From IMG/VR virus record IMGVR_UViG_3300032562_000004, positions 171,813-235,812 of that record: a stretch of DNA of 64,000 nt. One strand, given 5' to 3'. Every line of letters starts with the position of its first letter. Positions within the stretch are counted from its first letter, which is position 1. Of this stretch, positions 1,293-51,341 are shown piece after piece. Below the pieces are notes generated by a model. It worked only from the letters and a program-made list of their open reading frames with translations, did not search any database and had not been told where the DNA came from. A program made the translations under genes and the position numbers.

Positions 1293-1294
1293 CT

Positions 1295-11771: not shown

Positions 11772-11777
11772 ACAAGT

Positions 11778-11806: not shown

Positions 11807-11810
11807 GCTA

Positions 11811-27821: not shown

Positions 27822-30482
27822 TTAGAACTCAAATAAATTTTGAAATGTATTTTCAGTATTAGTAGCACTAGCTAAGTCCCAATCTAATACACTTAATAAG
27901 TTATCAATCTTTTGGTCTACAATAGTAGCTTCCATTAAGGCATCATCAAATGGAAGTTCTTTAAACCAATCAGGCAAACGTTGCTCATCTGTAGGGTAAC
28001 CAATACTAGTCCAACCCAATGGATTTGGCTTTAACTTACATACAATAGTTTTCATGCCGTCGACTACCGCAATAGAATAATTGTCGCTATTCATACGACG
28101 TAGATTGTTCCAGTTTAGTGCCGCACGAACGTGTCCTGGCATATTAGCTTTGCCTGCTTTTTCTTCAGCCGCACCATATTTGGTCAAGTTGTTTACACGT
28201 TTAGGTGTACCCTTTTCCCAAGCTGGACGCTCAGCAAACGCATACTTAAATTCTCTAATGCGCTCAACAATTTCTTCACGACCTGTACCAGTTAATACCT
28301 TTTCCAAAATCTCACTTAAAAACTCTTGAATTATTTTAGGAGTATCCGAACGCTTTAAGTCTAAGCCCATAGCTTTAATCTTGCCTGGCTTACCGTCTAC
28401 GTCAAGGCGCTTGCCTTCTAAGTCATAAATTAATACAGCATAACGCTTCTTAGTAATAAACAAACTATTAGATGCTACTAGTTCGCGACCCGCTTTAATA
28501 AGTTCGCCAGCTTCACGAGGACAGTGGAAAGCCTGTTCCATAAATGCCGGAAATGAATCATTAACTTGATCCGCAATGCTATCATAGAGTTGAATACAAC
28601 TTTCTTTACTCCAAGACATCTTTCCAGCCGCCACATCATCTTTGATAGCTGGCCACGCTGTAAAATAGCATGAGTCAGTGTCACCATAGATAATTGCTTG
28701 TCCTAAATGGTCTTTAACCCCAAAGATACATTCGTTAATATAACTAGCCATGTGTCGAGCAATACTACGACCCGATAGTGTAGTTGACTGTCCAATACGC
28801 TTGTCAAAGAAACGACAATGTGGATTTAAAATAGCACCGTATAACGAATTTAAGTTAATCTTCTTAACTAACTGTCGCTTATCCCAGAACGCAATCATCT
28901 TAGGATCAGTAGCTTCTTTTTTCTTAGCTTGAAGTTCTTTACGTTCAGCATACCAACGCTCTAACAATCCTGGCACAACACCTTTACGCTCATATGTAAC
29001 AATAGTGCCATTAGCGGTTAGCATCCAAGGTTTGTTAGAATTAAATACCATCTCCCAAATCTCAGCCGCACTATGTACAGTACTATCGCCATCTTGCCAG
29101 TCGATTGTAATTTCAGTACCACGCTGTTGATCCATGACCGCTGTATATTCTAATGTAGCAAACATACCTTCCCACGCTGCCGCAAATGATTTGCCTTTAC
29201 CAACAATTTCATTAATGTAACGATCAGTCATAATAGGACGAAGTTGTCCTACTACAGTTTCCATTCCCATGTTCAACGCACGAATAGCAGATGGATAAAG
29301 TGAGTTAATATCCACAGCGCCGATCCATTCATGAATACCCTTTTTAGGATACGCAACATAAGCACCTGCGGCCGCTGTATCTTCTTCGTCTGTTAATCTT
29401 TGTTTACGATTAGGTACAACAAGTCCACGCTCATGTGCTTCGTTAATAATAGCTTGTTCAGTAACAGCTACGGCACCCATTGTAGTTGCTAACAATACAG
29501 TATTGGCGTGTGCGAGTTCGTTAGCTAAGTCCAAGAAGCGTAACTTCTTATCTAACTTGTCTAACAACAATGTATCTTGCCTGTTATACACAATAAACTG
29601 TTTAAAGTCTTGATTGTATAATTGATCCAATGTGCCTTCGTATTGTGTTTTACTTTCGCCTAGTTCATATTCAGAAATAGCATCCAATGAATAACTGTGT
29701 CGTTCTTCATAGGTGTACTTACGATATAATTGCATATAGTCCATGTGTACACGACCTACGATATCATAAGTTGTGCTAGTAGCACCATATCGCTCAAATT
29801 CACGCTCTTTAGGGAATTGACCCCACAAGCAGAATCTGCGTGTATCATCTTTAGACAATACTCGCTTGATACGATTTACTGTGTATGGTATATCATAGCC
29901 TTCTGAGTTCCAACCTGAAATAACATCTGCGTCATCGATTAAGTCCAGGAATGTTTTTAACATATCCTCTTCTTTTTCAAACACAATACAGTTTTCAAAG
30001 TCTTTAGCAATATCATTAGCTGTTTCGATACTCATATGCTTGGGTGGCACAACCAATGTAACTAGTTGCTCCATCCATTGTAAGTAAACAGAAATAGCTG
30101 TAATGCCGTTGAATGGATCAGTGGTAGGAGAGAATCCTTTCTCCTTGTGAAAGTCTACTTCAATGTCGAAGAATGCCGCATGGAGTTCTGGAGCATCTTT
30201 ATTTTTGTAATTTTCTTCTAAACAACGGAAGATAGGATTGATATCAGATTCATAAAGTTGTTTGCCTTTTTGAATGGCTACTTCCTTACGAAACTCTTTA
30301 CTATTACGACTAGAAAAGCGGGCAACTGGTGTGCCATAGATAGAAGTAAATTTACCTCTAGGATCGTTGTAGTAAAAGATATAATCAGCGGGGTATTCTT
30401 TATAAATTCTTTCCCCGTTGATTCGTTCTACAACATGAATTCGATCGTGTTCACGATCATATAGACAATCTACATAACTCAA
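27822..30482 (-). CDS. Family B DNA polymerase (T4 gp43-like)
   Basis: Exo FDIE, DINSLYPS, KINLNSLYG, YGDTDS; TTG start with GGAG SD. Confidence 0.97.
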   Translation of the reverse strand: MSYVDCLYDREHDRIHVVERINGERIYKEYPADYIFYYNDPRGKFTSIYGTPVARFSSRNSKEFRKEVAIQKGKQLYESDINPIFRCLEENYKNKDAPELHAAFFDIEVDFHKEKGFSPTTDPFNGITAISVYLQWMEQLVTLVVPPKHMSIETANDIAKDFENCIVFEKEEDMLKTFLDLIDDADVISGWNSEGYDIPYTVNRIKRVLSKDDTRRFCLWGQFPKEREFERYGATSTTYDIVGRVHMDYMQLYRKYTYEERHSYSLDAISEYELGESKTQYEGTLDQLYNQDFKQFIVYNRQDTLLLDKLDKKLRFLDLANELAHANTVLLATTMGAVAVTEQAIINEAHERGLVVPNRKQRLTDEEDTAAAGAYVAYPKKGIHEWIGAVDINSLYPSAIRALNMGMETVVGQLRPIMTDRYINEIVGKGKSFAAAWEGMFATLEYTAVMDQQRGTEITIDWQDGDSTVHSAAEIWEMVFNSNKPWMLTANGTIVTYERKGVVPGLLERWYAERKELQAKKKEATDPKMIAFWDKRQLVKKINLNSLYGAILNPHCRFFDKRIGQSTTLSGRSIARHMASYINECIFGVKDHLGQAIIYGDTDSCYFTAWPAIKDDVAAGKMSWSKESCIQLYDSIADQVNDSFPAFMEQAFHCPREAGELIKAGRELVASNSLFITKKRYAVLIYDLEGKRLDVDGKPGKIKAMGLDLKRSDTPKIIQEFLSEILEKVLTGTGREEIVERIREFKYAFAERPAWEKGTPKRVNNLTKYGAAEEKAGKANMPGHVRAALNWNNLRRMNSDNYSIAVVDGMKTIVCKLKPNPLGWTSIGYPTDEQRLPDWFKELPFDDALMEATIVDQKIDNLLSVLDWDLASATNTENTFQNLFEF

Positions 30483-30550: not shown

Positions 30551-30558
30551 TATAATAT

Positions 30559-30819
30559 TTATAGTGTTTTGCCCACTTGAGTTAAAATTTGTTCTAGCAA
30601 GCTATGGTCATCTTGTGTACGGCCAAATTCAGCTTTGTGAGCAATCTTAATAGCTTTTTTAAGGATAGCTGGTTTAATTTCTAATTCTTCAGCAATAGCT
30701 TTAACTGTGTCATTCAATCCACCTTGTAGTGTTTCGATTTCCATAGTAACAGCCATACCTTCATTGATAATTTGCTCTAATTTTTTAGTTTGTTCTGCTG
30801 TGAATACGCGGTCTGACAT
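30559..30819 (-). CDS. Small DNA-binding protein (DsbA/GapR-like)
   Basis: 86-aa helical protein, ...VKAIAEELEIKPAILKKAIKIAHK. Confidence 0.55.
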   Translation of the reverse strand: MSDRVFTAEQTKKLEQIINEGMAVTMEIETLQGGLNDTVKAIAEELEIKPAILKKAIKIAHKAEFGRTQDDHSLLEQILTQVGKTL

Positions 30820-32921: not shown

Positions 32922-35408
32922 TTATTGACCTTGGATAGACCAGTCGTAGTCTACATTAACGACAACTTTGCCTTGCTTACCATAATATGCGTATGGATCA
33001 AACTCGTCACTAGTAACTTTGATACGCTTACTACTGCCATCATCAAAATATACTGTCCAAACAAAGTATTCGCCTGGGCGCAAACTTTCATTAACTTCGT
33101 CTTTAATCAAACGCAATGCTTCTTTGCGTACTTGAATATGACCGCCGTTATCTAAGTCTACTGTATAATATCCAGGAGCGCCTTTAAATGCGCCTGGACG
33201 GATTTCTCCAATAGTGCCCATTTGTCCAGCTTCAGGACCTTTAACAATCTTAACACGATTGCCTAAGTTCTTAGCTTCACTGATAGCTTCAGCTAACATA
33301 ACATCTAGGTTTTCGATACTTTCACAATGCCATTTTCTAAGTGATAATGCTTTACGAGTTGGCTCTCCGTTGGGCTTTTTCATAGGACCCTTCATGCCAC
33401 TCATACGAGCGCAAAATGATTTGCGGCGCTTATCATCTTTACTGCCTTTTTTAATTTTACTAGGCTTTTTAGTAACAGCGGTTTGTAGTTTAGATCCAGG
33501 ATGTTCTTTGCGATAAGAGTCAACACCTTTCTTGTTTAAGCCGCCGTTTTTATTCTTGCCTGATTTCTTTTGCCAAGCGGCTGTTTCGTCTACAGCTTTC
33601 TTTTTAGCAATAGCAATAGCAGCTTGTTGTGCTGGGTTAGCGGCTTCTTCAACAGATTCATTAGGCACACAGTTACGCACTCGGCCACCATTTTTGCCCT
33701 TCTTAGTTCCTTCTTCGTGTTTGCCAGGCCAACATTTGGAAAAACCATTTGAATCTTTTTGACCTTTTTTGATTTCTGTAAATGTTTTACGAGCTGATTC
33801 ATAGATAGCAGGTTTAGTAATATTGTATCCATTACGAACAGCCCACGATAAGAAATTATCTGATTCTTCAAGTTGACCAGTTAATCCTTTGTAAGCACCT
33901 TTAACCATGTCAATTTGTTTTTGTCCAACTTGTTGCATAAATGATTTTTTAGGTTCAGCTTTCTTAGGTGCCTTAGGAGCTGTCATTTGCTTAATAGCAT
34001 ATTCTTCAGCATCCTTGCGTAACTTAGCACCTTCTTCATCAGTCATTTCACCTAATCTAGCGGCAGCCGCTTTTTTCAATTGATTAGCGTGTTTGCCGGC
34101 ACCACTTTGCATTACTGACTTAGGAGCATGGGTACTTTTTCTAAGAGGTTGCGATAAAGGATTAGAGCGAACGGTCATGTTGCCATCAATGCCCTCATCT
34201 ACTTCTTGATCATCGCCGTTAATTTCGTGTTCGTCACCTTTGTGTAAATCTGGATCAGGTTGACTCTTCATACCTTTAGCTTTAGCAATTAAATATGCTA
34301 ATTCTTTATCACCCATTGGATTGTCTAACTCTTCCAAGCCGCCAAAACCTTGCCCTGGCTTAGGAGGATTTGGATCTGTACCTTTCCAGTATCCGCCAAA
34401 CTTAGGACCATCTGGATGATGTGCGGCTGCAGCCATTGATCCTTCCTTCATGATAGGATTTAATGTAATCTTATCTGCTTTTTCTTTTTCGCCTTGGTTG
34501 TATAATTTCTTCTTCCAGTTATCGTGAAAGCGGCGAGCATCTTCATAGTAATCAAACTGTTTAACGGACTTGCCGGCTAAACAAACTTCATATGGCTCTA
34601 CTTTGTTAAAGTCTTGCCAACCTTCTACTTTAATTAATTCATCCTGGTCAGGCTCGCCTGGGGCAGAATCTTTCCATTCTTCGACTGTAGCAGGAGCTTT
34701 AGTAATACCATGTTCTTTGTTAGCTTTTTTACGCCAAGCGATATAACTACCATTATTGTTTACACCACCACCATGCTCATCTAAGTCTGCTTTGCGAGCT
34801 CGCATAGCATTATGGCCTTTGGACCACAATAAATGTTCTGGCGATCCTTTTGGATGCGGATTGCTATCATATGATTTACCTTTAATAGCGGCATGCATGC
34901 CAGCATCGTGCGGGCTTACTTTTAAACTTTCGTCTACATCGCGATTTTTGTTATTGTAGAATTTTTTAATACTACGAGCACTTGTGCGTGGCTTTGGAGC
35001 AATACGATAATCTCTGCCTGGGGCTTGTTCTTTTTTGCGACGAACTACAGCTTTAGCTTCTTCCTTGCTACCGTAAGTTCCTTCTTTAGTGCCGTCAATA
35101 AAAACTGTATATGTATAATTTGTATCTGCGTAGTCTTCTTCTAAATCAAACGCATCTAAATTACTTTGTGCTGTTCTTTCATTATGGGCCAATGTTTCTG
35201 CGCCCGGAGCTTCATCTACTTTTAGTTTGTAATAACTGTCGCGCTCTGCTTTAGCTTTAGCGTATGCGTGACGCATAGCTTCTTTATATTTAGGATCGTT
35301 TGATTCTTTAGCACGAGCTAAAAAGTCATCCATTTTAGCATTTAAGTCTTCAATACGACGTGCTTCAAGGTCGTCGATAGCCCCTTCAAATATATCAAAT
35401 AAATTCAT
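32922..35408 (-). CDS. Large mosaic, probably virion-internal polyprotein (includes a DUF6321-like module, a CWPG..K..C motif and a KOW-like module)
   Basis: Many short modules separated by V/L-x-E linkers; AWQKKSGKNKNGGLNKKG...RRKSFCARM; RVKIVKGPEAGQMGTI. Confidence 0.75.
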   Translation of the reverse strand: MNLFDIFEGAIDDLEARRIEDLNAKMDDFLARAKESNDPKYKEAMRHAYAKAKAERDSYYKLKVDEAPGAETLAHNERTAQSNLDAFDLEEDYADTNYTYTVFIDGTKEGTYGSKEEAKAVVRRKKEQAPGRDYRIAPKPRTSARSIKKFYNNKNRDVDESLKVSPHDAGMHAAIKGKSYDSNPHPKGSPEHLLWSKGHNAMRARKADLDEHGGGVNNNGSYIAWRKKANKEHGITKAPATVEEWKDSAPGEPDQDELIKVEGWQDFNKVEPYEVCLAGKSVKQFDYYEDARRFHDNWKKKLYNQGEKEKADKITLNPIMKEGSMAAAAHHPDGPKFGGYWKGTDPNPPKPGQGFGGLEELDNPMGDKELAYLIAKAKGMKSQPDPDLHKGDEHEINGDDQEVDEGIDGNMTVRSNPLSQPLRKSTHAPKSVMQSGAGKHANQLKKAAAARLGEMTDEEGAKLRKDAEEYAIKQMTAPKAPKKAEPKKSFMQQVGQKQIDMVKGAYKGLTGQLEESDNFLSWAVRNGYNITKPAIYESARKTFTEIKKGQKDSNGFSKCWPGKHEEGTKKGKNGGRVRNCVPNESVEEAANPAQQAAIAIAKKKAVDETAAWQKKSGKNKNGGLNKKGVDSYRKEHPGSKLQTAVTKKPSKIKKGSKDDKRRKSFCARMSGMKGPMKKPNGEPTRKALSLRKWHCESIENLDVMLAEAISEAKNLGNRVKIVKGPEAGQMGTIGEIRPGAFKGAPGYYTVDLDNGGHIQVRKEALRLIKDEVNESLRPGEYFVWTVYFDDGSSKRIKVTSDEFDPYAYYGKQGKVVVNVDYDWSIQGQ

Positions 35409-35409
35409 T

Positions 35410-36486
35410 CTATTTTTCTTCTATGTAATCAGCCGATTGCTCAGCGTCATGTTTGGCTTTACGACGAGCCATATACATTTCTAATGCTATTTCACATTCT
35501 TCTAAACTGCTAAAACGACTTGGTAATTCTTTGCCAGCACGTTTGATACAAAAGCCATTGCGCTCATCGCCGTGGATCTCAACTAATACAGAGCCGCCGC
35601 CACCTGAGCCAATGCCAACATCCTCGACTGGAACATTAACTGTTTTAACTGGAGCTGTTGCGCTTTCTGCGTATGTAGGATCAGTTAACCCAGCAGGCGC
35701 TTCGCCTTGTGCCGGAGTTTGATTTGGATCTTCGTCCAACTCATTTTCGTGTTCGCCGTATTCGTCGGCATCTTCATCATCGGCGTATTGATTGTATTCA
35801 ACATTAGCAGCATTAAAACTGTGTGTTCCGTGATTGTATAAATTTACAATTATAAAATTACTGCGTTGTCCAAAATCAACAATTTCGCCAGTAGCGCCGC
35901 TAAACTGTACATCGCCAATAATTTCAACTGGGTCACCAATTCGTAATTCTTGACCTTCTTCTAAACTATCAGGGATAGCTTCTTCTACATCTTGTTCTTT
36001 TTTCTTTGCTAACTCAGCACGAGTTTGTTGTGCTAACTTGTTGCCTACGCCTGTGCCTTGTTTGTTGAAGCCCGGAGGATTGCGAAACGGTTTAGCCGGA
36101 GCCGGTGTGTATGGTGCGTCGGGATCTTGATCAGCTTCGTCGACTGATTCTTTAGACTGTAGTTCTAAATCTTTTAATTCTTTTTTCTTTAAGTCTAAGT
36201 CTTGTTTTTTCTTAGTAATTAAATCTTTGTCTTGTTTGAGTGAATCTTCTGCTGATTTTAAATAATCAACTAAACTTGCTTTAACTTTTGATAGTACATC
36301 GTCTGACTTCTCTTCGGCAAACTCAACACCACCGACACCAGGAGTAAAATCCTCTTCGGCTTTTTTTAAATTATTAAAGAGTGCTGGTTTCTTCTGTTTA
36401 GATTCAGCAATATGCTCATGCTTAGGAGCTATGCGCCCCTCAAGTATGGCTAATTTTTCTACAATACTATAAAAGTTATGGTCCAT
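35410..36486 (-). CDS. Acidic mosaic protein, probably virion-internal
   Basis: LEG/FAEE/VDEA/VEEA/LEEG/LDED/YAES linkers; KOW-like LRIGDPVEIIG...GATGEIVD. Confidence 0.65.
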   Translation of the reverse strand: MDHNFYSIVEKLAILEGRIAPKHEHIAESKQKKPALFNNLKKAEEDFTPGVGGVEFAEEKSDDVLSKVKASLVDYLKSAEDSLKQDKDLITKKKQDLDLKKKELKDLELQSKESVDEADQDPDAPYTPAPAKPFRNPPGFNKQGTGVGNKLAQQTRAELAKKKEQDVEEAIPDSLEEGQELRIGDPVEIIGDVQFSGATGEIVDFGQRSNFIIVNLYNHGTHSFNAANVEYNQYADDEDADEYGEHENELDEDPNQTPAQGEAPAGLTDPTYAESATAPVKTVNVPVEDVGIGSGGGGSVLVEIHGDERNGFCIKRAGKELPSRFSSLEECEIALEMYMARRKAKHDAEQSADYIEEK

Positions 36487-36926
36487 TATGCTCTAGCTTC
36501 TTTCAAAAAACTTTGTAGCATCCAGATAAACTTGTTTGTGGCAGTTAATCTTTCAGCGATAAAATTTGCGATATCTTGCTTGTTCTCTGCTGTAGCAGCC
36601 GCAAAACATTCATTAAGAAGGTTGATCATAACATGGGAATCAGCTAGTAATTCCTCAAGCATGAGTTGTGCTCTAGGCACTTTAGTTTGGTCTTGAATAC
36701 GGGATAACTCGTTATAACGAGTAAGGCTAGCAGGAGTGTATTCTCCCAGGGTGCGGATAAACTCCCCGAGCGGGTCAACGGCAGAATATGCGTCCTCATA
36801 CACTTTTTGTAGGAATTTATGATATTGATAGAAGTCTTTGCCTTCTACATTAAAATGAAAGAAATGGGCTTTTAAGTAATAAGCGAAGTCACTCGCGAGT
36901 AAAATTTTCATCAATTCAGCCAGCAT
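36486..36926 (-). CDS. dps: Dps/ferritin-like DNA-protection protein
   Basis: HFFHFNVEGKDFYQYHKFLQKVYED...D..GE.IR...WML. Confidence 0.88.
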   Translation of the reverse strand: MLAELMKILLASDFAYYLKAHFFHFNVEGKDFYQYHKFLQKVYEDAYSAVDPLGEFIRTLGEYTPASLTRYNELSRIQDQTKVPRAQLMLEELLADSHVMINLLNECFAAATAENKQDIANFIAERLTATNKFIWMLQSFLKEARA

Positions 36927-36948
36927 TTTAAATCCTTTAAATTATATA

Positions 36949-36969
36949 TTATTTAGTTAAAACTAAATA
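36949..36969. promoter_or_regulatory. Back-to-back TAAATA late promoters (inverted repeat)
   Basis: TATTTAGTT-AA-AACTAAATA serves dps (minus) and the HNH gene (plus). Confidence 0.65.
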
Positions 36970-37031
36970 GAAGTGTAGTTCGCGGATCTCGACAATCCCA
37001 ACTACTCTAACGCTTATAAGGAGCAATCAGC
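36961..37031 (+). promoter_or_regulatory. Late promoter plus conserved structured leader of homing endonuclease (copy 2)
   Basis: AACTAAATAGAAGTGTAGTTCGC-GGAT-CTCGACA-ATCC-CAACTACTCTAAC...AAGGAG. Confidence 0.8.
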
Positions 37032-37613
37032 ATGAGTATTTACAGAAAAGATAGCTACCATCGTAAAATATACGAGGATCACTATGGGCCAATTCCAAAA
37101 GATTCAGAAGGTCGTAGCTACGAAATACATCATATAGACGGAAATCACGAAAATAACAACATTGATAATCTTCTCTGTGTAAGCATACAGGAACATTATA
37201 ATATACACTATTCTCAAGGAGATTTCAAGGCTTGCCTTATAATGTCTAAAAGAATGGACATTTCTCCGGAAGAAAAATCGAGGCTAGCAAAAATAACTAA
37301 CGCAGGCAAAAACAATCCAAGTTATGGGATTTATTGGTGGACTAATGGAGTTGAAGAAAAGAAATCAAAAACTCAACCGGGACCAGAATGGACTCGCGGA
37401 AGATCTGCTATATTAAAAACTCGTGTATCGTCTACTATAGTTAAAAAGGATATTCGAGCAGGGGCAAAAAATACAAGTTATGGAAAATATTGGTGGACTA
37501 ACGGAATAGATAGCATTAAATCAGATAAGTGCCCAGAGGGATATTACAGAGGGGTAGGAGAAATACAGAGAATGAAGTCAAGAAATAAGTTGGCTAAATC
37601 TTGGATTTTTTAG
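37032..37613 (+). mobile_element. Free-standing HNH homing endonuclease, antisense to flanking genes
   Basis: YEIHHIDGNHENNNIDNL...EHYNIH; two YG.YWWTNG repeats. Confidence 0.88.
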
Positions 37614-37806
37614 TTGATTTGTATGCTTTATATTCTTTAGGAGTATTAGGAGTAAGATCGTTAGTTTCGACACCTGTAAAGAATGAGCCCTGGGGTATTC
37701 TTCGCTGTACGGCTCCTAGAGGAGTAGCCACGGGCGCAATACTTCCTGCGCTAGTACTAGCTACACTGGCGTCTTCTTTTAACCCTATAATTTCAAATAG
37801 TTTCAT
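37594..37806 (-). CDS. Small late protein (MKLFEIIGLKEDASVASTSAGSIA...)
   Basis: 70-aa ORF with CTS-like N-terminus. Confidence 0.6.
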   Translation of the reverse strand: MKLFEIIGLKEDASVASTSAGSIAPVATPLGAVQRRIPQGSFFTGVETNDLTPNTPKEYKAYKSTKKSKI

Positions 37807-38090
37807 TCTAAAATCCTAAATTTTAAGTTATCTATAACTGCTCCGGGCCCGTATTCTACTTTTAAACTTTTAACATTTAGTTGGGCTAAATGCGGGGCAA
37901 CTAACTCATAGCGTAACGTGTATTCACCCGGTTCGGCACTAATTTGTAAATCTTCTTCCAAAGCACTATCAGTCCAAATCCATGTACGTTCTGCAAATAA
38001 TTCGTCATTAACATACAAACGATAGATAGGACTTAATCCTTCCCAATCGCAGTCAATATTACTCAGTATACGCACAAATTTTTTGCTCAT
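37803..38090 (-). CDS. Hypothetical (probably structural) protein
   Basis: 95-aa beta-rich ORF after TAAATA. Confidence 0.65.
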   Translation of the reverse strand: MSKKFVRILSNIDCDWEGLSPIYRLYVNDELFAERTWIWTDSALEEDLQISAEPGEYTLRYELVAPHLAQLNVKSLKVEYGPGAVIDNLKFRILE

Positions 38091-38108
38091 ACTGTATTTA
38101 GCGGAATT

Positions 38109-39914
38109 TTATTTAGGTGCGGCAACTAATCGAACATTCTGTGCGATATCGCCTCTGTAGCCGTGTGTTGATTCAGGGTCATCTGCCCCGGTATTGATAG
38201 GTTTGTTAGTTTTCATATTAAATGCGTAAACATTTAATGAACGCCCATAACGTTGTTCTAAATCTTGCCATACTCTTTGGCCGCCTGGGGATTGATATTT
38301 GTCACTAACTAGCGTAAGCCCTTGGTTTTTAACCAACCAAGCATACAAATCTGCGGCACGAATAGGAGCTTTAGGACCTCCATATATACCAAATATTTCA
38401 AATGAATGTGGTTTGTTTGTTCCGCTAATGGTCATTTGACTAACGCGAGTTTTAGGATCAAAAACGGAGTAAGCAGAATCGTTACCCTTGTCCCACTTAT
38501 ATACTTCTAACTGTCCTAAGTTCCCTACTAAGTTACCAAGTAAACGTTTTTCTTTACCTGGAGGCACTGGTTCGCCTTTGTTTACTAAACCTGACTTGTC
38601 TTGATTTTTAGTTTTGATATTGTTATGATAAATCACTTCACTTAACTCTCGTTCTTTATTTACGCGAGCCATATGCTGATCATATGTTTCTTCATCATCG
38701 TCTGACTCTAAGGGAACATAAGCTGGCATAGAAGTCATACCCATATCTCTAGCAGCCACAGCTCTGTGGTTGCCGTCAATAATCCAGCCTTCATTATCTA
38801 CTACAATAGGTTTATTTTTAATGTCTTGTGCTGTAATATCTTTAACATAATTGTAGTCAACTAAGTTGATTTGATCGTACGGACTAACTTCATCTGAATC
38901 TATATGTAAACTAGTTAGAGGTACCGTAGTGAGTTCCCATTTAGCATGATTCATTACAGCATGGTCTATAGTAAATTCATCTTTAGGATGTATTTTTTTA
39001 ACATAAGACAATATTTCTTTGTTACTTTCTTCGCTGACTGGTTCCCATGACATTGGTTTAGCACCTTTAGCGACGGGTTTAAAACCATGACGCTTATATA
39101 ACTTAGTTAATGAGGCTTGACTTACATTACCCTTAGCCCAAGGATACAATGTTAACTTAATACCCGCTTCTTGTGCTTGACGCTGTAGCTCTTTAATAGC
39201 ACGACTACCAACACCTTTGCGTTGTTCGGGCCCGGCCATGATCCAATCTATTTCTACTGTATCAGGTTTCATACTAGGTTTGAGTTTGAACGCGGCAAAT
39301 TGCTGATCTTCGCCTTCTCCCCATACCATAACTTTATCTGCTTGACCATACGGCCAATCAGGATACTGACTATATACCCTGTCAATAAATTCTTGTGCTT
39401 TATTTGATTCTACAGCTTCATTTAAATTTTTTTTTAAAAAAGTATCGGCTAACTTTTTACACAGTAATTTAATCTTGCTATTTTCTGTAATAATGATTGT
39501 AAACTTTTCTTGGGTATTATCTTGTGATGGATCACTATACCCGCAATAAGCTAATTTGATATGTTTTTCATTTAATAAATCTGTACAGCTAACGCCATAG
39601 CGATTATCGCCAGTATCTTCACAGCATGGGCTCAGTGTAGTAATTACAATACTGCCCTTTGGCAATTCTCCGTACTCTTCTTCATACTTGTCTATGGCTG
39701 CTCGTTCCGCATGGATTCTTGAATTTCCATATAGATAATTTACACCAGTGACTAATCTACCCCGAGTATCTAATACCGCGGCGGCTACCATACCATAAAA
39801 GTCTGGATTATCTTGTTGTCCTTCGATGACCATATCGCAAAGCTCAACAAGAACTGCGTCTAGTTTTTCACGACTAAACTTTAGTTTAGGTTGGATAAAA
39901 TCGTTTAAAATCAT
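38109..39914 (-). CDS. Multi-domain protein: Zn-deaminase + GNAT + ParB-like + GNAT-like
   Basis: HAERAAI...TLSPCC..C; QRKGVGSRAI; PIVVDNEGWIIDGNHR; SDKYQSPGGQRVW. Domains joined at LNE, VSEE and LSE. Confidence 0.8.
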   Translation of the reverse strand: MILNDFIQPKLKFSREKLDAVLVELCDMVIEGQQDNPDFYGMVAAAVLDTRGRLVTGVNYLYGNSRIHAERAAIDKYEEEYGELPKGSIVITTLSPCCEDTGDNRYGVSCTDLLNEKHIKLAYCGYSDPSQDNTQEKFTIIITENSKIKLLCKKLADTFLKKNLNEAVESNKAQEFIDRVYSQYPDWPYGQADKVMVWGEGEDQQFAAFKLKPSMKPDTVEIDWIMAGPEQRKGVGSRAIKELQRQAQEAGIKLTLYPWAKGNVSQASLTKLYKRHGFKPVAKGAKPMSWEPVSEESNKEILSYVKKIHPKDEFTIDHAVMNHAKWELTTVPLTSLHIDSDEVSPYDQINLVDYNYVKDITAQDIKNKPIVVDNEGWIIDGNHRAVAARDMGMTSMPAYVPLESDDDEETYDQHMARVNKERELSEVIYHNNIKTKNQDKSGLVNKGEPVPPGKEKRLLGNLVGNLGQLEVYKWDKGNDSAYSVFDPKTRVSQMTISGTNKPHSFEIFGIYGGPKAPIRAADLYAWLVKNQGLTLVSDKYQSPGGQRVWQDLEQRYGRSLNVYAFNMKTNKPINTGADDPESTHGYRGDIAQNVRLVAAPK

Positions 39915-39915
39915 T

Positions 39916-41256
39916 TTAGTGGAACATTAGGAAACTGTTGATTACATCCAATCTGTTGGCAGCACGGTCTCCGTGTCCTGCTGGAAATATAACCACATTC
40001 CACTTAGGTTTAGGGCCTTCAGGGATGGTTAACATCTGATCGTATGTGATAATTGATGCTGGATCAATTTTATATCTAGTGGCCAACATTTTTTTAAATT
40101 CTTCCCATGCTTCGGGACTTTTAACCTGTGTACGACCTTTGGCATCTTTAACATATTTCCCTTTAGCATCCGTAACAAACAATGTGCGGAACAAGTCTTT
40201 GGGTAATGTTACAGCATCTTTAACTGCATTTCCTTGAGCTTTGTGTAGTTCAATTTGCTTTTCTTCACCGCGCTTACTTCCCGAACTAAAGTTAACAATA
40301 AAATTATCTGGTTTGTTGGCAGTTGCAGCCGCGGCTATTTTTGTATAAGCATAAAATTTTACATCTGGATTAGTACGAGCAACGTTAAATGCTAGATCTA
40401 AATATTCTTTACTAAAGAAATCTCCAGCATCATGCCAGCGTACAACTAATCTAATACCATGCTTGTCTGCTTTGCCTTTAAGACCTTGTATTTCTTTGTT
40501 AACCATGGCCATATATCCAGCAGGGTCATTGACTAAAAAGTTTAATGCTTGTGCGGCTGACATGCTACTAGCAGGGAACATTACATATCCACCTTTACGA
40601 GCGTAGCAAAATAATTGACATCCGCCAGCACCAGGGCAAGTAGTAATTTCTACAAAATCGCCTGTTTCCTCGTCCACAACAACACCGCTTAATGCTGGCA
40701 ATGTTAAGTCATAAACAATTTCGCCTTCTGTAGCACTCTTACTCATTTTAGCATTAGTGCCTAATAATGAACGAGGACGGGTAGTGATTTGACGGGCCAA
40801 ATCATCTAAATCCCATTCGGTACCTTCGTCATCTTTAGTAATTGCTTTGATATTGCTACCGTGTATGATTGGAGCAAATCTATCTTTCTTTGTCTTAGTA
40901 CCAGTTTTAATACGATCGGCATAGCCTTGTAACTCATCGCGACTCATTCGGCGATGTGGAGCATTTAACCCAATAGCTTCATTTGTAATTTCTTCTACAT
41001 TTAAAATTTTAGCCCCGGGGTGGTGAATCTCAACTTTATGTTGTGCGATTCGTGCGCTCTGAGCTTTGACCTTAAAATGTTTTGTGACACCGTATATATT
41101 TGCTGTAATTCTAAATTGTTTATTAAATTGGCCGGCTGCTAATAACCCACTAATGTCAGATTCTTCAACACCTTGATCTTCAATATGTAACGGAGTGACT
41201 TTAAATCCACCTAGTGTTGTTTGTGCAGATTCAAAGATAAATTCATGGGCTTTCAT
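39916..41256 (-). CDS. Gene-product-88-like protein with a CTS-like N-terminus
   Basis: MKAHEFIFES; TCPGAGGCQLFCYA; VRWHDAGDF; YAYTK. Confidence 0.7.
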   Translation of the reverse strand: MKAHEFIFESAQTTLGGFKVTPLHIEDQGVEESDISGLLAAGQFNKQFRITANIYGVTKHFKVKAQSARIAQHKVEIHHPGAKILNVEEITNEAIGLNAPHRRMSRDELQGYADRIKTGTKTKKDRFAPIIHGSNIKAITKDDEGTEWDLDDLARQITTRPRSLLGTNAKMSKSATEGEIVYDLTLPALSGVVVDEETGDFVEITTCPGAGGCQLFCYARKGGYVMFPASSMSAAQALNFLVNDPAGYMAMVNKEIQGLKGKADKHGIRLVVRWHDAGDFFSKEYLDLAFNVARTNPDVKFYAYTKIAAAATANKPDNFIVNFSSGSKRGEEKQIELHKAQGNAVKDAVTLPKDLFRTLFVTDAKGKYVKDAKGRTQVKSPEAWEEFKKMLATRYKIDPASIITYDQMLTIPEGPKPKWNVVIFPAGHGDRAANRLDVINSFLMFH

Positions 41257-42731
41257 TAATACGTCCTTTTAAATAATTCTAATTCTTCCATCATCCGATG
41301 GACGATGCCATCTGGACGAAGTTCTTGTGGTTTACCTTGTGCGTCGGTGTCTAATAAAAATGCATTAGCACAACGACCAATTTCTCCTGGACGCACATCA
41401 ACAGTTAGCGCCATTAAGAAGCGTGGATCTTTTGCTTCTGCGGCTGTTGGAATATAGCCCGTAGCTTCATTTAATTCGATAGCCATAAACAATTCAGGAT
41501 GTAGTTGAGCATACTTACGCATCAATACACCAGCTTTGGCATTAGCTTCATTTTCATATGGACTGCCATCTTCTCCAGCGTCTGCTGGAACTGGTCCTAT
41601 TTCATTTTGTTTTTGATGTACAAGTTCGTGTGCTACAGTTCTTAATACATCCATAATATGACGGCCGCCTACACCAACTTCAAGTTCATTGGTTCCATCA
41701 TTGTAGCGTCCAAAAGTTTTGTTTCTTACGGACCATTGTGGGTCACGACGAATTCTTAAGTTAATTTCTTTTTTTAATTTTAAATGGGAAACACAAAAAT
41801 TAATAAAATCTTCAATAATGTCTTTGTCATTATGTTTGTCTTCGTTAGCAAACATACAAGTACTAGGATTGGTTCCGTCTGGAGTAACACCAACTTCATC
41901 TAATTGTGCTTCGTTGGTAAACTCGGAAGTAGTAGGATTAGTACCGTCTGGTGTAATGCCAACTTCTTCGATATAGTCAGGACCAAAACCATATTTTACA
42001 GGAGCTTGTGGCTTACGCTCTTTTAAACTTAACTCTTGGCTTCTTGCTTCTTTACGAGCATTATGTAACTTTTTCAATTCACCACTATTGCGTAGTAATT
42101 TGAAGGCTAAATTTTCTGGGCCAAACTCGCCGTGATTAGCTAGTCCTGTACCACGCATATTTTTAATTTTATCTAATAGAGCATTCATTTGGTCTATAGA
42201 TTTAGATTTAATTGCTTGTTTAATACGCTTACTTAAATCCTTGTATTTGCTCTTAACGCTCATATCATCGATATCAGCGTGTTTGCGTCTAGGAATTTGT
42301 ATCCATTCGTTATCTACAATACTGTAAATTCCTTGACTATGATGTTCTTCGCTTATGTCCTGTACATACAATTCAACAGGAATACCTTTAATAGTAATTT
42401 TATGTTCGTTGTTATAGATAAACTTTTTAGCATCAAAAAGTTCACGATATATTTCTTTGTTTTCGTCATTGCCTAAATCTACAATTAAATGTAAATCTAT
42501 ATCAGAATGTGGAGTATAAGAAAATGCGGCATTACTACCCGAACTTGTTATATCTTTTAAATTTAAGTTGTCGACGCCAAGTGATTCAGCAAAGTCTGAA
42601 GCAATAGCTAATAACTGCTCACGGATTTCAGGATGTAAATGTTCGCTTTTATCCCATAATAAAGGATTAAGTTTATCGTGAAATTTAACTGCGTCTGCTA
42701 AATTGAAGGATTCTAATTGTTCAATGTTCAT
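41256..42731 (-). CDS. Pol-beta-like nucleotidyltransferase fused to a zincin (HExxH) domain
   Basis: SGSNAAFSYTPHSDIDLHL...PVELYVQ; RTVAHELVHQKQ...ENEANA. Confidence 0.8.
   Translation of the reverse strand: MNIEQLESFNLADAVKFHDKLNPLLWDKSEHLHPEIREQLLAIASDFAESLGVDNLNLKDITSSGSNAAFSYTPHSDIDLHLIVDLGNDENKEIYRELFDAKKFIYNNEHKITIKGIPVELYVQDISEEHHSQGIYSIVDNEWIQIPRRKHADIDDMSVKSKYKDLSKRIKQAIKSKSIDQMNALLDKIKNMRGTGLANHGEFGPENLAFKLLRNSGELKKLHNARKEARSQELSLKERKPQAPVKYGFGPDYIEEVGITPDGTNPTTSEFTNEAQLDEVGVTPDGTNPSTCMFANEDKHNDKDIIEDFINFCVSHLKLKKEINLRIRRDPQWSVRNKTFGRYNDGTNELEVGVGGRHIMDVLRTVAHELVHQKQNEIGPVPADAGEDGSPYENEANAKAGVLMRKYAQLHPELFMAIELNEATGYIPTAAEAKDPRFLMALTVDVRPGEIGRCANAFLLDTDAQGKPQELRPDGIVHRMMEELELFKRTY
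41841..41970 (-). repeat. Tandem duplication of a ~23-aa module EVG(I/V)TPDGTNP(T/S)T..F.NE
   Basis: Two copies visible in both protein and DNA. Confidence 0.85.
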
Positions 42732-44739: not shown

Positions 44740-45558
44740 TTAATAAAATTTTCGACCAGTTTTTTCGTCGATGAAATTAGGAATTAAATCTTCTTCAAAA
44801 CTTCTATAGCAATGTGCGGCGGTGCGTTCTGCTAGAATTGTTGACTCTAATAATTTTGCTAACTTGGCTCTATGTTGTTTACTTTCATTGCGTACTACTG
44901 GCATAGGTTGATCAATTACATCGCCGTCAAGGTCAGGCTGTTGAATTACTATGTCGCGAGCTTTTTGTGCTACGCCTAATTTCTTATCAAATAATTGTTG
45001 TAGGGCAGTATCATCAGTACCATATAAGTCATGTAAGATTTGTTTACGATCCGCTTCGCTACCATTAGAATACATATTGCGTATTGCTGAAGCAGAGTCA
45101 GCATCTTTGCCTCTAACTTTAAATGTAACAGTTGGAGTAACCATTACATAAGCGTGTTTGGTCAACGGTTGAAGTTTGCCATCTTTAGGATAAGGTTGCA
45201 TATAACTTGGCTCACCGTTCTTTTTAACACCAAACTTGAAGCGTGGATTTTCGCCCATGTCTTTTTCTGATACAGCAAACACTAACGCAGTATTTTCTGG
45301 ATCTGGAATATCTTTTGTAATTTCTTGTGCTTGATAAGGATTGCGTACTTGTACAATGTGACTAGCAGGTATTCCTATTTTTGTAAGCATCTCTACTTTG
45401 TCAGCAAAACTAAAGGGATTTGTCACAGGAGCAGTTACATCAGAAGTAGCTACATACACATTTTCAGCACCAAATTTCTTAGCTAGATAATCGTAGCTAG
45501 ACTTATGACCTTTGTGGCCAGGCTGAAATCTTCCGGGATATATTACAACTGTACGCAT
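44740..45558 (-). CDS. HxGH nucleotidyltransferase-like protein
   Basis: YPGRFQPGHKGH, NPFSF, SASAIR. Confidence 0.75.
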   Translation of the reverse strand: MRTVVIYPGRFQPGHKGHKSSYDYLAKKFGAENVYVATSDVTAPVTNPFSFADKVEMLTKIGIPASHIVQVRNPYQAQEITKDIPDPENTALVFAVSEKDMGENPRFKFGVKKNGEPSYMQPYPKDGKLQPLTKHAYVMVTPTVTFKVRGKDADSASAIRNMYSNGSEADRKQILHDLYGTDDTALQQLFDKKLGVAQKARDIVIQQPDLDGDVIDQPMPVVRNESKQHRAKLAKLLESTILAERTAAHCYRSFEEDLIPNFIDEKTGRKFY

Positions 45559-45954: not shown

Positions 45955-46683
45955 TTATGCTGGGATGATTTCCAGCGTTTTTCTAATTATACCAGGGGAT
46001 ATAAGCTCTAGCATAACTAGCCAGCCTTCCCCATCGTGATCTATAAAGAAATAATCTTGGGTCCGCAAATAAGGGGACTTTGATAGCCATTTAGCAAAAG
46101 CCGGAGCAACTCTTATAGTATCTTGTTGATTATTAAAAAAGTTAATTAAACTGTCTTTATTAGCTTGTGTTAGTTTTACGCTTTTAAAATAACTTCTGTG
46201 GGTAAACTTAGGAACTTTTAATTTAACAGTATTTTTAGGTCTCGATATTATAGCTTCTGTATATTCCTTATTGTCAAGGAAACTCATAGCATTAAGTCTT
46301 TTAAGTAAAGACATATTGTTACTGTATATCCAACCCAAGTTAACCGATGTAACTAATTTAAAATCAGCGGTTGTTGTAAGTAGTAACTCAGCTAATTCGT
46401 GAAGATCCTCAGAAGTTTTATCAGTAATATCTTTCCAACGCCTTGTTAATATAGTTTGAGCTAGTTGAGGTTGGCCGCCGGGACGAACTAAAGTCCAACG
46501 CTGTTGTGCGACTTCTCGCCACAACTTTCTACGATCAATAATAGCATCGATATAGTTGTGGTCGAGAGTCTTCATAGCACTTACTTCATCTAAAGCAAAT
46601 GCTACGCAGTATCGATATTTGTCGTAAAAGTATCTATCTTTATCGACAGGCTTAAACGTTAGGAGATTCGCCATCAAGAACAA
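45955..46683 (-). CDS. Hypothetical protein
   Basis: 242-aa ORF. Confidence 0.65.
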   Translation of the reverse strand: MFLMANLLTFKPVDKDRYFYDKYRYCVAFALDEVSAMKTLDHNYIDAIIDRRKLWREVAQQRWTLVRPGGQPQLAQTILTRRWKDITDKTSEDLHELAELLLTTTADFKLVTSVNLGWIYSNNMSLLKRLNAMSFLDNKEYTEAIISRPKNTVKLKVPKFTHRSYFKSVKLTQANKDSLINFFNNQQDTIRVAPAFAKWLSKSPYLRTQDYFFIDHDGEGWLVMLELISPGIIRKTLEIIPA

Positions 46684-48931
46684 TAATACCAGAATTGTCT
46701 ACAATCGCCAATGGAGCAGTTTGGATAATTGTAAAATCAATCTTATCATCGATTATGATAGCATTGACGGTGCAGTCAGATAAGCGTTCAAACAAAATCT
46801 TCTTAGACAAAGGTACACGAATCAATTCGTCAATCTTACGATTAAGTGGACGAGCACCCATCTTAGGATCATAACCTTTATCAGCTAGCATATCAATAAC
46901 TGCTTCGGATAAATTAAGTCTAATATTTTTATTGTTCAAACTAACTTGTAACTGTTCAACAAATTTAAGTACAACTTTCTTAATAGCAAGGGTATCAAGT
47001 TTCTTAAACTTACAAATTTGATCGATACGATTACGCAACTCAGGTTTGAAGAAGTCCTTCATTGCTTTATCTTCTGATCCTGTTTTTTGTAGTGCTTGAC
47101 CAAATCCAATGTTATTGTTTTCGTTATCGCGAGCACCTAAGTTACTTGTCATAATGATAATAGTATTCTTAAGGTTAACAGTTTTGCCGTTAGCACTAGT
47201 AATACGAGCTTCGTCTAACATCTGTAACATAATGTTAATAACATCAGGGTGAGCTTTTTCAATTTCATCAAACAGGATGATTGAATACGGATTCTTACTA
47301 ATATCACTGATTAACTTGCCGCCACCTACATTGCCATCTTCAAATCCTACATATCCTGGAGGCGCACCAATCAACGAACTTACAGTATGCTTTTCTTGAT
47401 ATTCTGACATATCATACTTTAATAATTGCATATCTAAGTTTGTAGCTAGTAACTTAGCAAGTTCTGTTTTACCAGTACCAGTTGGTCCTAAGAATAAGAA
47501 ACTAGCAATAGGACGATTGTCGTTGCCAATACCAGAAAAGTTAATATAAACTCGCTCAAGTACGCTGTCTACTGCTTCGTCCTGACCATATAATTTTTCT
47601 TTAATATTCGATTCAAGTTCTACAATATTAGCTGAACGCTCGTTTTGTAATCGATCCATAGGAACTTCAGTAACACGACTTAATTGTTCCATAATCATTT
47701 CTTTAGTAATAGTTACATTACCTTGATCCTTAACTCGTTCCTTAGCGCAAGCGCCGTCTAACAAGTCAATACTCTTATCTGGATTCTTACGGTCGTGTAT
47801 ATAACGACCTGATAAATCTACAGCGGCCGTGATAGCATCTGTATCAATTAATACATTGTGGAATGATTCTAAGCGTGGGCTAAGTCCAATAAGGATTTGT
47901 TCTGTAACTTCGTTAGTTGGTTCATCGATACTTACACGATGGAAACGACGCATTAACGCACGATCCTTTTCAAAGGACTCGTAGTATTCTTCCCATGTTG
48001 TACTTGCGATTACCTTAAGTTTACCTTTAGTAATAGCAGGTTTTAACATATTAGCAAAGTCAAGTGTAGATTGTGAGCTAGCGCCAGCACCTTTCATAGT
48101 GTGTGCTTCGTCTACAAACAAAATACAATTACCTTTAGTTTCTAATGCGCCAATAACTTGTTTGAACTTTTCTTCAAATTCGCCGCGATATTTAGAACCA
48201 GCTAACAATGATCCAATCTCTAATGCCCATACTTCATGAGCAATTAAGAACTTAGGAACACGATTATTAATAATCTCTTGAGCTAGGCCTTCTGCGATAG
48301 CAGTTTTACCTACCCCGGGATCTCCAACCATCAATACATTAGCTTTAAATTTACGAGCTAATACTGTAATCATTTCATCAAGTTCAGCACCGCGGCCAAT
48401 CATTGGCTCAAGGCGATCTTCTACCGCCATCTTAGTTAAGTTAACACAGTATTCAGTTAAAATTTCATCTGCTTGCGTAGTTGTAAGAACTACATCATCA
48501 TGTTTGTAGTGTGCTTGCCAGTATTCCATGAACTCTTGTTTCTTAACACCATACTTTAATAAAAAGTAATGTGCGTGTGAATTATTTTCAGCCATCATAG
48601 CAAGATACAAGTCGCCAGTATTCATTGAACGGCGCCCTGTGAACAATACTTGTGTCATTGCTCTGTTGAAGCAACGCTCGAGAGCATTTGTTTTCTTAGG
48701 CTGATTGTCTTTTTTAGTAGTAACCAAACTAGTTAAACTTTGTAAGTAAGCATCTAACTCCATATCTAATAAATCTACACTAGTCCCAAAAGATTCTAGT
48801 ACTTTATAAAATGGAGCATGGCGTATTAATACCAATAAGACGTGCTCAGTTAAAACATATTCGTGTTGACGCTCTTTAGCCAATTTAACAGCTTGGGCGA
48901 CGATTTGTTCGATTTCTTTATTGTTTTGCAT
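46652..48931 (-). CDS. clpA: ATP-dependent Clp protease ATP-binding subunit ClpA
   Basis: Clp N-domain, two AAA+ modules (GDPGVGKT, GPTGTGKT), DMSEY, LFDEIEKAHPD, MGARPL; no ClpB middle domain. Confidence 0.93.
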   Translation of the reverse strand: MQNNKEIEQIVAQAVKLAKERQHEYVLTEHVLLVLIRHAPFYKVLESFGTSVDLLDMELDAYLQSLTSLVTTKKDNQPKKTNALERCFNRAMTQVLFTGRRSMNTGDLYLAMMAENNSHAHYFLLKYGVKKQEFMEYWQAHYKHDDVVLTTTQADEILTEYCVNLTKMAVEDRLEPMIGRGAELDEMITVLARKFKANVLMVGDPGVGKTAIAEGLAQEIINNRVPKFLIAHEVWALEIGSLLAGSKYRGEFEEKFKQVIGALETKGNCILFVDEAHTMKGAGASSQSTLDFANMLKPAITKGKLKVIASTTWEEYYESFEKDRALMRRFHRVSIDEPTNEVTEQILIGLSPRLESFHNVLIDTDAITAAVDLSGRYIHDRKNPDKSIDLLDGACAKERVKDQGNVTITKEMIMEQLSRVTEVPMDRLQNERSANIVELESNIKEKLYGQDEAVDSVLERVYINFSGIGNDNRPIASFLFLGPTGTGKTELAKLLATNLDMQLLKYDMSEYQEKHTVSSLIGAPPGYVGFEDGNVGGGKLISDISKNPYSIILFDEIEKAHPDVINIMLQMLDEARITSANGKTVNLKNTIIIMTSNLGARDNENNNIGFGQALQKTGSEDKAMKDFFKPELRNRIDQICKFKKLDTLAIKKVVLKFVEQLQVSLNNKNIRLNLSEAVIDMLADKGYDPKMGARPLNRKIDELIRVPLSKKILFERLSDCTVNAIIIDDKIDFTIIQTAPLAIVDNSGIIVLDGESPNV

Positions 48932-51304: not shown

Positions 51305-51341
51305 ATTAGCTCCTTGTTATTGTTATTATTTTGTATTTATA

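Follow-up and report, generated by a model that had tools for sequence, protein, structure and literature searches.

The stretch of DNA analysed here (the window, 64,000 nucleotides) is the final 64 kb of the IMG/VR contig IMGVR_UViG_3300032562_000004 (235,812 bp), window base 1 being contig base 171,813. We propose, with a probability of roughly 55%, that a single minus-strand run of tightly packed genes extending from p491 to p828 (32922-42731) is the internal-protein (ejection-cargo) locus of the phage, i.e. a T4 internal-protein system built as multi-enzyme polyproteins. In the sequence data we observe an N-terminal leader and its restriction to this locus, shuffling of modules, and retention of a Glu at module junctions. 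The label is carried by at least ten unrelated module families, in a locus whose gene content differs between close relatives. The proteins and leaders concerned are listed below (aa, amino acids; pI, isoelectric point).

41256-42731 (-), p491, a polyprotein of 491 aa with a nucleotidyltransferase (NTase) module (1-245), two short repeats, an HExxH module (about 301-415) and a 70-aa C-terminal module
39916-41256 (-), p446, with a leader, a small removable module and a GP88 domain (PF17338, 3e-35)
41230-41256 (-), leader of p446, MKAHEFIFE/S, the closest match in the window to T4 MKTYQEFIAE/A and a match to the strict pattern
38109-39914 (-), p601, a 601-aa polyprotein with deaminase, GNAT, ParB-like and C-terminal GNAT-like folds, N-terminus MILNDF
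37594-37806 (-), p70, a conserved basic protein of 70 aa with N-terminus MKLFEIIGLKED and leader MKLFEIIGLKE/D
35410-36486 (-), p358, an acidic (pI 4.6) protein of 358 aa with variable middle modules, N-terminus ...IVE/KLAILE/G
32922-35408 (-), p828, 828 aa, with about a dozen small modules and a hydrophobic-x-Glu site in each short linker
35385-35408 (-), leader of p828, MNLFDIFE/G (MNLFDLFEG, MNIFDLFEG and MNLLDIFEG in orthologs), a match to the strict pattern

The start of p491 was placed at the ATG at 42731, which orthologs support over an upstream TTG at 42755. A sequence-only reading of this DNA had quoted five N-termini (MKAHEFIFES, MNLFDIFEG, MKLFEIIGLKED, MNIEQLES for p491 and MILNDF); all of them are present and all lie on the minus strand. 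The genes are not consecutive, as that reading had it, since p95, a Dps/ferritin-like gene, p358 and an HNH endonuclease on the opposite strand lie among them.

A leader common to unrelated modules

The leader has the consensus M-[K/R]-x-x-[E/D]-[F/L/I]-[I/V/L]-x-E and a length of 5-11 residues, mostly 8-9. It was followed in 51 related metagenomic loci obtained by two collection scans and cited here by their L numbers. A T4-like label of about 10 residues ending in hydrophobic-x-Glu is present on p446, p828, p70 and most stand-alone modules of the relatives. Stand-alone modules start with MKIREVIVES (GNAT), MKIKELLVEN (ParB), MRIDEVIY (the C-terminal domain of p601), or MKITEIIVET and MRVAELFDES (both DUF6321); orthologs of p70 begin with MRLHEFVNLQE, MRAHEFIAEN and similar sequences, and further starts of this type in the relatives are MKANEFLTEK, MRSKEFVREM, MRFAEFVAEL, MRAHEFIAEN and MKISELLIE/T. 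In the T4 record, IPII and IPIII begin with MKTYQEFIAE/A, gp21 with MNEPQLLIE/T and gp22 with MLKEQLIAE/A.

The bias was quantified on 158 distinct N-termini from the 51 loci, taken without pre-selection by pattern. Position 5 was D or E in 49% of them as compared to 5% in other window genes, position 6 was hydrophobic in 71% (41% in the other genes) and position 2 was K or R in 39% (20%). A loose leader pattern was found in 75 of 171 locus open reading frames (ORFs) and in 38 of 395 flanking ORFs (Fisher p ~1e-19), many of the latter being further cargo genes just beyond the crude limits set for the locus. Among the other window genes, 1 in 80 matched the leader pattern. The strict pattern was found at 2 of the 1185 candidate starts in the six frames of the window, both in the cluster (p446 and p828). 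The proposal of an N-terminal address label common to unrelated cargo therefore holds, as judged by the bias at positions 5 and 6 and by the confinement of the strict pattern to the cluster.

Leader residues are encoded by varied codons, and selection therefore acts at the protein level. Two other explanations of the leader were discarded: a linker for recombination at the DNA level, because both codons and residues vary, and a translation-initiation bias alone, because other genes lack it and internal junctions would stay unexplained.

Two genes outside the cluster also have starts of this kind. A 47-aa ORF at 54379-54522 (-) with the leader-like start MRFEEILRALAD may represent one more small cargo gene or match by chance. 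Directly downstream of the DNA polymerase gene, a 302-aa gene (26911-27819, -) has a conserved N-terminus M-x-L-S-[D/E]-L-V-x-L which fits the loose pattern; no known family was matched by this gene or its orthologs in L007, L008, L034, L038, L043, L047 and L051.

Module shuffling, fusion junctions and x-x-Glu sites

The locus always occupies one position: a cytidylyltransferase-like gene and an unnamed 311-aa gene (phrog_1574) lie upstream of it, and an 86-aa regulator-like gene and the DNA polymerase gene follow. Its conserved core is formed by p95, p70, the Dps-like gene, a p358-like gene and a p828-like gene, and the remaining content varies even among loci whose shared genes are 80-90% identical. 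The four modules of p601 are found singly or in other combinations among relatives. The deaminase, followed in the window by GNAT, ParB and the C-terminal domain, is joined to GNAT only in L004 and to ParB in L010, and stands more or less alone in L008, L009 and L011. The HExxH module is fused in p491 and stand-alone with a leader in L034 and L047. The length of the p828-like protein varies across loci between about 500 and 1978 residues, and one module of 58 residues recurs in ten different positions with about 80% identity. Counting cargo families by single linkage was useless, since mosaic proteins merge 111 ORFs into one component.

The cytidylyltransferase (NMNAT-like) beside the locus varies in a similar manner. 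The window copy (44740-45558) is leaderless (MRTVVIYPGRF...), while those of several relatives (L044 8709-9692, L045 6031-7029, L047 5096-6205, L021 9056-10675, L032 4734-6254) carry the leaders MFLTELAEPQ, MYINELAEPQ, MNLNQLFET and MLLREFFES. For this reason the enzyme seems, from sequence, to switch between packaged and unpackaged forms.

The junctions and modules examined in the window are as follows.

41460-41477 (-), p491 junction L-N-E422/A between the HExxH and C-terminal modules; 20 BLAST segment ends of relatives at 413-424
40981-41160 (-), optional 60-residue module of p446 (residues 33-92), flanked by V-E-E32 and V-E-E89/T-N-E92
39408-39428 (-), p601 linker 163-169, L-N-E166/A-V-E-S, between deaminase and GNAT; 9 BLAST segments end exactly at 166
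39024-39044 (-), p601 linker V-S-E295/E between GNAT and ParB-like modules; BLAST segment ends and starts at 290-300
38631-38648 (-), p601 junction L-S-E426/V-I-Y before the C-terminal module; a stand-alone 180-aa gene of L008, MRIDE/VIYHNN, aligns in the same register
33321-33584 (-), DUF6321 module of p828, very basic, preceded by V-D-E608/T (PF19846, 4e-21)

Module gain and loss falls at these sites. Relatives of p491 have 90-220 additional residues inserted at the E422 junction, and the 60-residue module of p446 is cleanly missing from the orthologs in L010 and L011, where the junction reads V-D-E/A. Stand-alone ParB genes, the counterparts of the p601 module that follows E295, begin with MKIKELLVEN or MKISELRT. 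Stand-alone versions of DUF6321 begin with MKITEIIVE/T, MRVAELFDE/S or MKIEELLE/S, in the same register as E608 of p828.

The correspondence was assessed by aligning stand-alone genes to fused proteins in the ungapped BLAST register. In 22 of the 48 non-redundant junctions the residue opposite the last Glu of the leader is itself a Glu, and a further 14 have it shifted by two residues, whereas the other alignment columns hold Glu in 2-10 (median 3). L, V or I occupies P3 at 15 of the 22 Glu-retaining junctions, and Glu retention is seen in about ten unrelated module families. In the window, L-N-E166/A-V-E-S of p601 faces the leader MKIREVIVE/S and L-S-E426/V-I-Y faces MRIDE/VIY; in p828, V-D-E608/T-A-A-W faces MKITEIIVE/T-A-T-W and L-G-E454/M-T-D faces MRSKEFVRE/M-T-D. 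Young fusions hold a nearly whole leader internally (L007 ...KKKPT-MKIHELIFES..., L045 ...IAE-SKIFEIMYES...). Older junctions have lost the M, K/R and E-F parts, and what remains of the leader is its terminal Glu and the hydrophobic P3, a pattern that would be expected if the cut site, not the address, were needed inside the protein. The suggestion that gain and loss of modules maps to Glu linkers is supported by this retention of the leader's last Glu in fused forms. The related idea of Glu linkers as what permits module swapping is better reversed: leaders become linkers upon fusion, and fusion would be tolerated if the protease separates the parts. In addition, DUF6321 as last module ends with ...RRWNCE and a stop codon (L009 9051-10004, L015 524-823, L048 2117-3805), where p828 continues as ...RKWHCE/S; the ends of modules as well as their starts therefore fall at Glu.

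The frequency of sites was compared with composition-preserving shuffles of each protein. In p828, [VLI]xE[ASDG] occurs 11 times as against 2.6 expected (z 5.5) and [VLI]xE 17 times as against 8.8; p358 is weakly enriched in the former (6 against 2.4), and none of about 70 other window genes reaches the level of p828. The 13 sites listed for p828 by the sequence-only reading are all present, at residues 66, 91, 160, 211, 244, 360, 405, 454, 515, 588, 608, 711 and 774. Its broader statement, that modules are repeatedly bounded by x-x-Glu, stands above chance for p828 but is not matched by enrichment in p601, p446 and p491. The phiKZ-type motif [SAG]xE is enriched in no cluster protein.

As for placement, 20 of 52 homology boundaries in five large proteins fall at [VLIM]xE, with 13 expected if sites are drawn from all Glu (p 0.003). 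The AlphaFold models of p828 and p601 are poor overall, with a mean predicted local distance difference test score (pLDDT) of 54-55, and coarse features alone were used. In the model of p828, low-confidence linkers hold 13 of 18 motif Glu compared to 16 of 48 other Glu, and five of seven short linkers contain exactly one site. In p601, E166 lies inside the sole low-confidence gap (163-169), which separates the confidently folded deaminase and GNAT domains. The predicted fragments of p828 are mostly of 25-190 residues and half of them are basic (pI 9-11). The largest, which contains DUF6321, has a net charge of +20 and would fit DNA-associated head contents.

These data also bear on an alternative that we regard as unlikely, in which the proteins are packaged as intact polyproteins. 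The leader alone would then work, whether removed or not, and the internal junctions would be uncut vestiges of fused leaders. The fusions clearly derive from leader-bearing genes, with L007 and L045 keeping a near-whole leader, and this history could explain leader-like junctions; three of the four large proteins lack overall motif enrichment, and one polyvalent protein, the virion RNA polymerase of N4, enters the virion without being processed (PMC5512222). However, the terminal Glu and hydrophobic P3 outlast the rest of the leader, pointing to selection on the cut site, and p828 carries about four times the expected number of sites, one per short linker.

Virion homologs, genome context and expression

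Proteins of a cultured phage provide a comparison at the level of the virion. In T4-like cyanophages a cytidylyltransferase and a homolog of the p491 NTase lie near the late sigma factor or DNA polymerase genes, and the locus is syntenic with them, in the order cytidylyltransferase, nucleotidyltransferase and DNA polymerase. For cyanophage S-CREM2, the proteome of CsCl-purified virions comprises 52 virion proteins (Table 3 of PMC10665884). Among them, gp156 is 37% identical to residues 14-237 of p491 and gp160 is 42% identical to a cargo protein of L048; the cytidylyltransferase gp154 is likewise included. Non-structural virion enzymes of S-CREM2 begin with MKDFDSFLEE (S-adenosylmethionine (SAM) hydrolase gp6), (M)KRFDAFLTE (APH-like kinase gp14) and MKNFSSFLTE (gp154), all of the shape of the T4 decapeptide. 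In a six-frame scan of the 174,876-bp genome, the pattern M[KR]x[FLIYM]xx[FLIM][FLIVM]xE was found at 4 of 4841 candidate starts, those of gp6, gp13, gp14 and gp154, and all four proteins are in the virion proteome (PMC10665884). S-CREM2 has a T4-type prohead protease, gp143, and the paper makes no mention of a targeting sequence (PMC10665884). By homology with this cultured phage, virion association is suggested for leader-bearing enzymes and for the homologs of cluster modules.

The phage itself is an uncultured freshwater jumbo phage of the T4 superfamily. The GC content of the window is about 37%, and the genome is probably at least 320 kb, since the overlapping 158.5-kb contig 3300031884_000939 runs on beyond the window's contig. 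The DNA polymerase (27822-30482) is of T4 type, with 50% identity to that of Sinorhizobium jumbo phage Phosso and 47% to that of Agrobacterium phage Atu_ph07. A megablast of the region against 50,697 phage records gave no match, no cultured phage being close at the DNA level, and protein searches for cultured relatives returned single-domain matches only. The window also encodes a clamp loader, a flap endonuclease, a Clp-like ATPase, a DnaJ-like protein, a cytidylyltransferase-like protein, lysis genes and a sugar-modification block. Head and tail genes are missing from the window, and genes for a prohead protease, a capsid protein or a portal were found neither there nor among the 51 related loci.

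Several points weigh against an internal-protein locus. A tblastn search with T4 head proteins against the window and the 51 loci did not find a prohead protease. The window's contig was not among the matches listed for three scans, which used Atu_ph07 gp204, a profile and the protease of a GC-matched 328-kb contig as queries; these scans returned hundreds of S77 genes, many with the same GC content and from the same kinds of sample. With a degenerate DNA pattern for the Dps-like gene, the contigs did not overlap the protease contigs, again among the matches listed. A gp21-type (S77) prohead protease is expected in this phage, its presence being assumed from lineage only. The T4-type late promoter TATAAATA was not found upstream of the cluster, and one-mismatch matches are below chance. 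The neighbours of the cluster, i.e. the DNA polymerase, cytidylyltransferase, Clp-like ATPase and DnaJ-like genes, are replication and chaperone genes, not virion structural genes; the T4 ip genes are likewise away from the T4 head-gene block. Each junction Glu could be merely the first conserved residue of its module. Moreover, the N-termini of p601 (MILNDF...) and p491 (MNIEQLES) are atypical as leaders, p601, p446 and p491 show no overall motif enrichment, leader patterns were set after inspection of the data, and the models used above are of low quality. As for S-CREM2, its pattern was written after three of the four matches were known as virion proteins, gp13 being the sole blind prediction, and, as its authors warn, virions may be accompanied through purification by abundant proteins (PMC10665884).

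In view of the missing TATAAATA and of the replication and chaperone neighbours, the description of the cluster as late genes was not upheld. Exact copies of TATAAATA in the window are only two, at 51334-51341 (-) and 30556-30563 (-), compared to 10 expected by chance; the motif is therefore avoided. The first copy lies 30 bases upstream of a holin-like gene (50621-51304) and fits a T4-type late promoter; the second is upstream of the DNA polymerase gene. A scan for sigma-70 promoters and terminators was uninformative.

Such a setting would also suit ordinary cytoplasmic enzymes of the early or middle phase which are not packaged and whose common N-terminus serves another function, for instance translation initiation, localisation or turnover. 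We consider this quite improbable. In its favour, the cluster lies among replication genes and has no late promoter, and the AT-rich codons of the leader (AAA, AGA, GAA, TTT, ATT) could favour initiation. Yet other window genes have the same codon bias but not the pattern (1/80), and Glu retention at internal junctions is beyond the reach of translation signals. The same kind of label is found on virion-proteome enzymes of S-CREM2, and in T4 it is an experimentally defined targeting signal.

The assignment of cargo domains was revised from that of the sequence-only reading. Above the Pfam threshold are the cytidine/dCMP deaminase (4e-8), GNAT (1.5e-4), GP88 (3e-35) and DUF6321 (4e-21), and the ParB-like module of p601 matches a PHROG family (3e-6). 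ESM Atlas matches of p446 were GP88 without exception. The Pol-beta NTase assignment of p491 is weak by Pfam (PF01909, E 0.013, under threshold), with a match to phrog_36119 at 1e-48 and cyanophage homologs annotated as nucleotidyltransferase. KOW stays under the gathering threshold (17.7-20.6 bits, 22.3 needed); the AlphaFold model of p828 has a small beta domain at 714-768. The supposed zincin is reduced to a bare HExxH motif, since nothing in Pfam or among PDB sequences was matched by this conserved module of about 115 residues. A sequence search of solved structures gave the deaminase and a weak GNAT match, nothing else. Residues 427-601 of p601 (38112-38636, -) have no sequence family match, and their predicted structure resembles a second GNAT-fold acetyltransferase (template modelling score, TM, 0.68-0.74 to viral GNAT clusters). 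Both p601 (deaminase, GNAT, ParB-like, GNAT-like fold) and p491 (NTase, HExxH) hold at least two conflict-type domains per polypeptide.

The HExxH module raises the question of which protease would act. That this putative metallopeptidase cuts the polyproteins, in the head or after delivery and in place of the prohead protease, appears very improbable to us. The module does recur as cargo (in p491, and stand-alone with a leader in L034 and L047), and autoprocessing by such modules was proposed by Iyer et al. 2017 (PMC5512222). On the other hand, it matches no peptidase family, p601, p446 and p828 do not contain it, and the junction motif, which has Glu at P1 and an aliphatic residue at P3, is characteristic of gp21-type serine proteases (PMC12991175). 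All three alternatives considered here nevertheless carry appreciable weight.

The remaining genes lying among those of the cluster are given here.

37803-38090 (-), p95, a conserved 95-aa gene without leader, in most related loci
37032-37613 (+), HNH homing endonuclease (PF13392, 3e-14), between p70 and the Dps-like gene and outside the system
36486-36926 (-), p146, Dps/ferritin-like (PF00210 6.5e-17, phrog_3636), in nearly all related loci, with no clear leader

No Pfam or PHROG family was matched by p95, and homologs of p70 in a protein-database search were unnamed metagenomic ones only. The HNH endonuclease gene overlaps the 3' end of p70 by 20 bases, and none of the related loci has it at this site. 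A few kb upstream of the cluster, a Clp-type AAA+ ATPase gene (46652-48931, -; phrog_4871, 1e-236) lies beside a DnaJ-like gene (48995-49807, -), a pair which represents phage-encoded chaperone or unfoldase functions. Genes at 8734-16529 (-) encode a SAM synthetase, a phosphoribosyltransferase, an NAD-dependent epimerase/dehydratase, a UDP-glucose/GDP-mannose dehydrogenase, a short-chain dehydrogenase, a cupin and a sugar C-methyltransferase; this sugar and cofactor block may serve the modification of DNA or surface glycans. Finally, a tmRNA and a tRNA-Met are encoded at 1024-1330 (-) and 1788-1860 (-), respectively. The tmRNA has the permuted, two-piece form of betaproteobacteria (RF01850 117.6 bits, RF04321 118.4 bits), which hints at a freshwater betaproteobacterium as host.

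Proposed mechanism and relation to known systems

In the mechanism that we propose, each cargo module would be made with an N-terminal leader acting like the T4 capsid-targeting sequence and directing it to the assembling prohead core. A gp21-type (S77) prohead protease would then cut behind the last Glu of the leader and free the mature module. T4 gp21 cuts after Glu at I/L-x-E and more weakly at other x-x-E (PMC12991175), and inside the prohead the internal proteins of T4 lose their targeting sequence to the prohead protease (PMC9958956); the junction Glu and the usually hydrophobic P3 match such a site. Because cargo genes are packed end to end, small deletions could fuse neighbours in frame, the leader of the downstream gene becoming an internal linker. 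Within linkers the targeting part would decay and the hydrophobic-x-Glu cut site would be kept, so that an entire string of modules could enter the head behind a single leader and be separated there by the prohead protease. The pieces predicted to be ejected with the DNA are the deaminase, two GNAT-like folds, the ParB-like module, the nucleotidyltransferase, the HExxH module, GP88 and small basic modules (DUF6321), and this cargo would act at the very start of infection. Targeting, cleavage by the prohead protease, ejection and an effect of the cargo on the host are what we infer from the observed features.

More tentatively, and at somewhat less than even odds, this grammar of address label and cut site may span the T4 superfamily (T-even phages, cyanomyoviruses and freshwater jumbo phages), make any gene into injected cargo and let fused cargo be separated by the protease. 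DNA-coinjected phage proteins are mostly unidentified outside a few model phages, and injected proteins, acting before any phage gene expression, are foremost candidates for a role in counter-defence. Should the rules for label and cut site hold, cargo would become predictable in T4-like and jumbo phages, including abundant freshwater and marine ones without a cultured host, and sequence could reveal which effectors are injected by thousands of uncultured phages. The mechanism would also account for the delivery and separation of large multi-enzyme phage proteins, would give polyvalent proteins a concrete processing mechanism, and would account for the rapid turnover of the locus, as gene fusion and fission would be cheap when a protease restores the parts. 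The label is potentially a tool for loading foreign proteins into non-T4 capsids.

That a conserved label targets hypervariable cargo to the capsid is known in principle from T-even phages, where the internal-protein cargo is highly diverse and the label alone is conserved (PMC3012670). New here are the label in a distant uncultured jumbo lineage and, by scan, in cyanomyoviruses, multi-enzyme polyprotein cargo, and leader-derived junctions that keep the cut site; full-text literature searches for the targeting-sequence phrase found no paper describing such a system.

The closest likeness is to IPI, IPII, IPIII and Alt of T4, which also have a short N-terminal label ending in hydrophobic-x-Glu and genes outside the head-gene block. 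In contrast to the T4 internal proteins, which are single small proteins, the cargo here consists of multi-domain enzymes and strings of up to a dozen modules; the label is one residue shorter, and the cut site seems to be used again at internal junctions. In this distant jumbo relative, which is uncultured, packaging and cleavage are predictions from sequence.

In phiKZ, 201phi2-1 and SPN3US, many head-internal proteins are processed after Glu by the S77 prohead protease, some at several sites, and the propeptides, mostly of more than 100 residues and with the site S/A/G-x-E, are thought to target proteins to the prohead (PMC5694885). The cluster differs from these phages by its leaders of T4 type, with 8-11 residues, and by the lack of [SAG]xE enrichment.

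With polyvalent proteins the cluster shares GNAT, Pol-beta NTase, ParB-like and HExxH modules in one polypeptide, extensive mosaicism and a predicted co-delivery with DNA (PMC5512222). For those proteins autoprocessing by a zincin module was proposed, without targeting signal or linker grammar (PMC5512222), whereas the cluster displays sites of prohead-protease type and a T4-like label, and its genes are not beside structural genes.

Virion enzymes of S-CREM2 combine a T4-type decapeptide with a syntenic locus, two of the proteins being homologous to modules of this cluster's family; they are single enzymes, whereas the proteins of the cluster are polyproteins.

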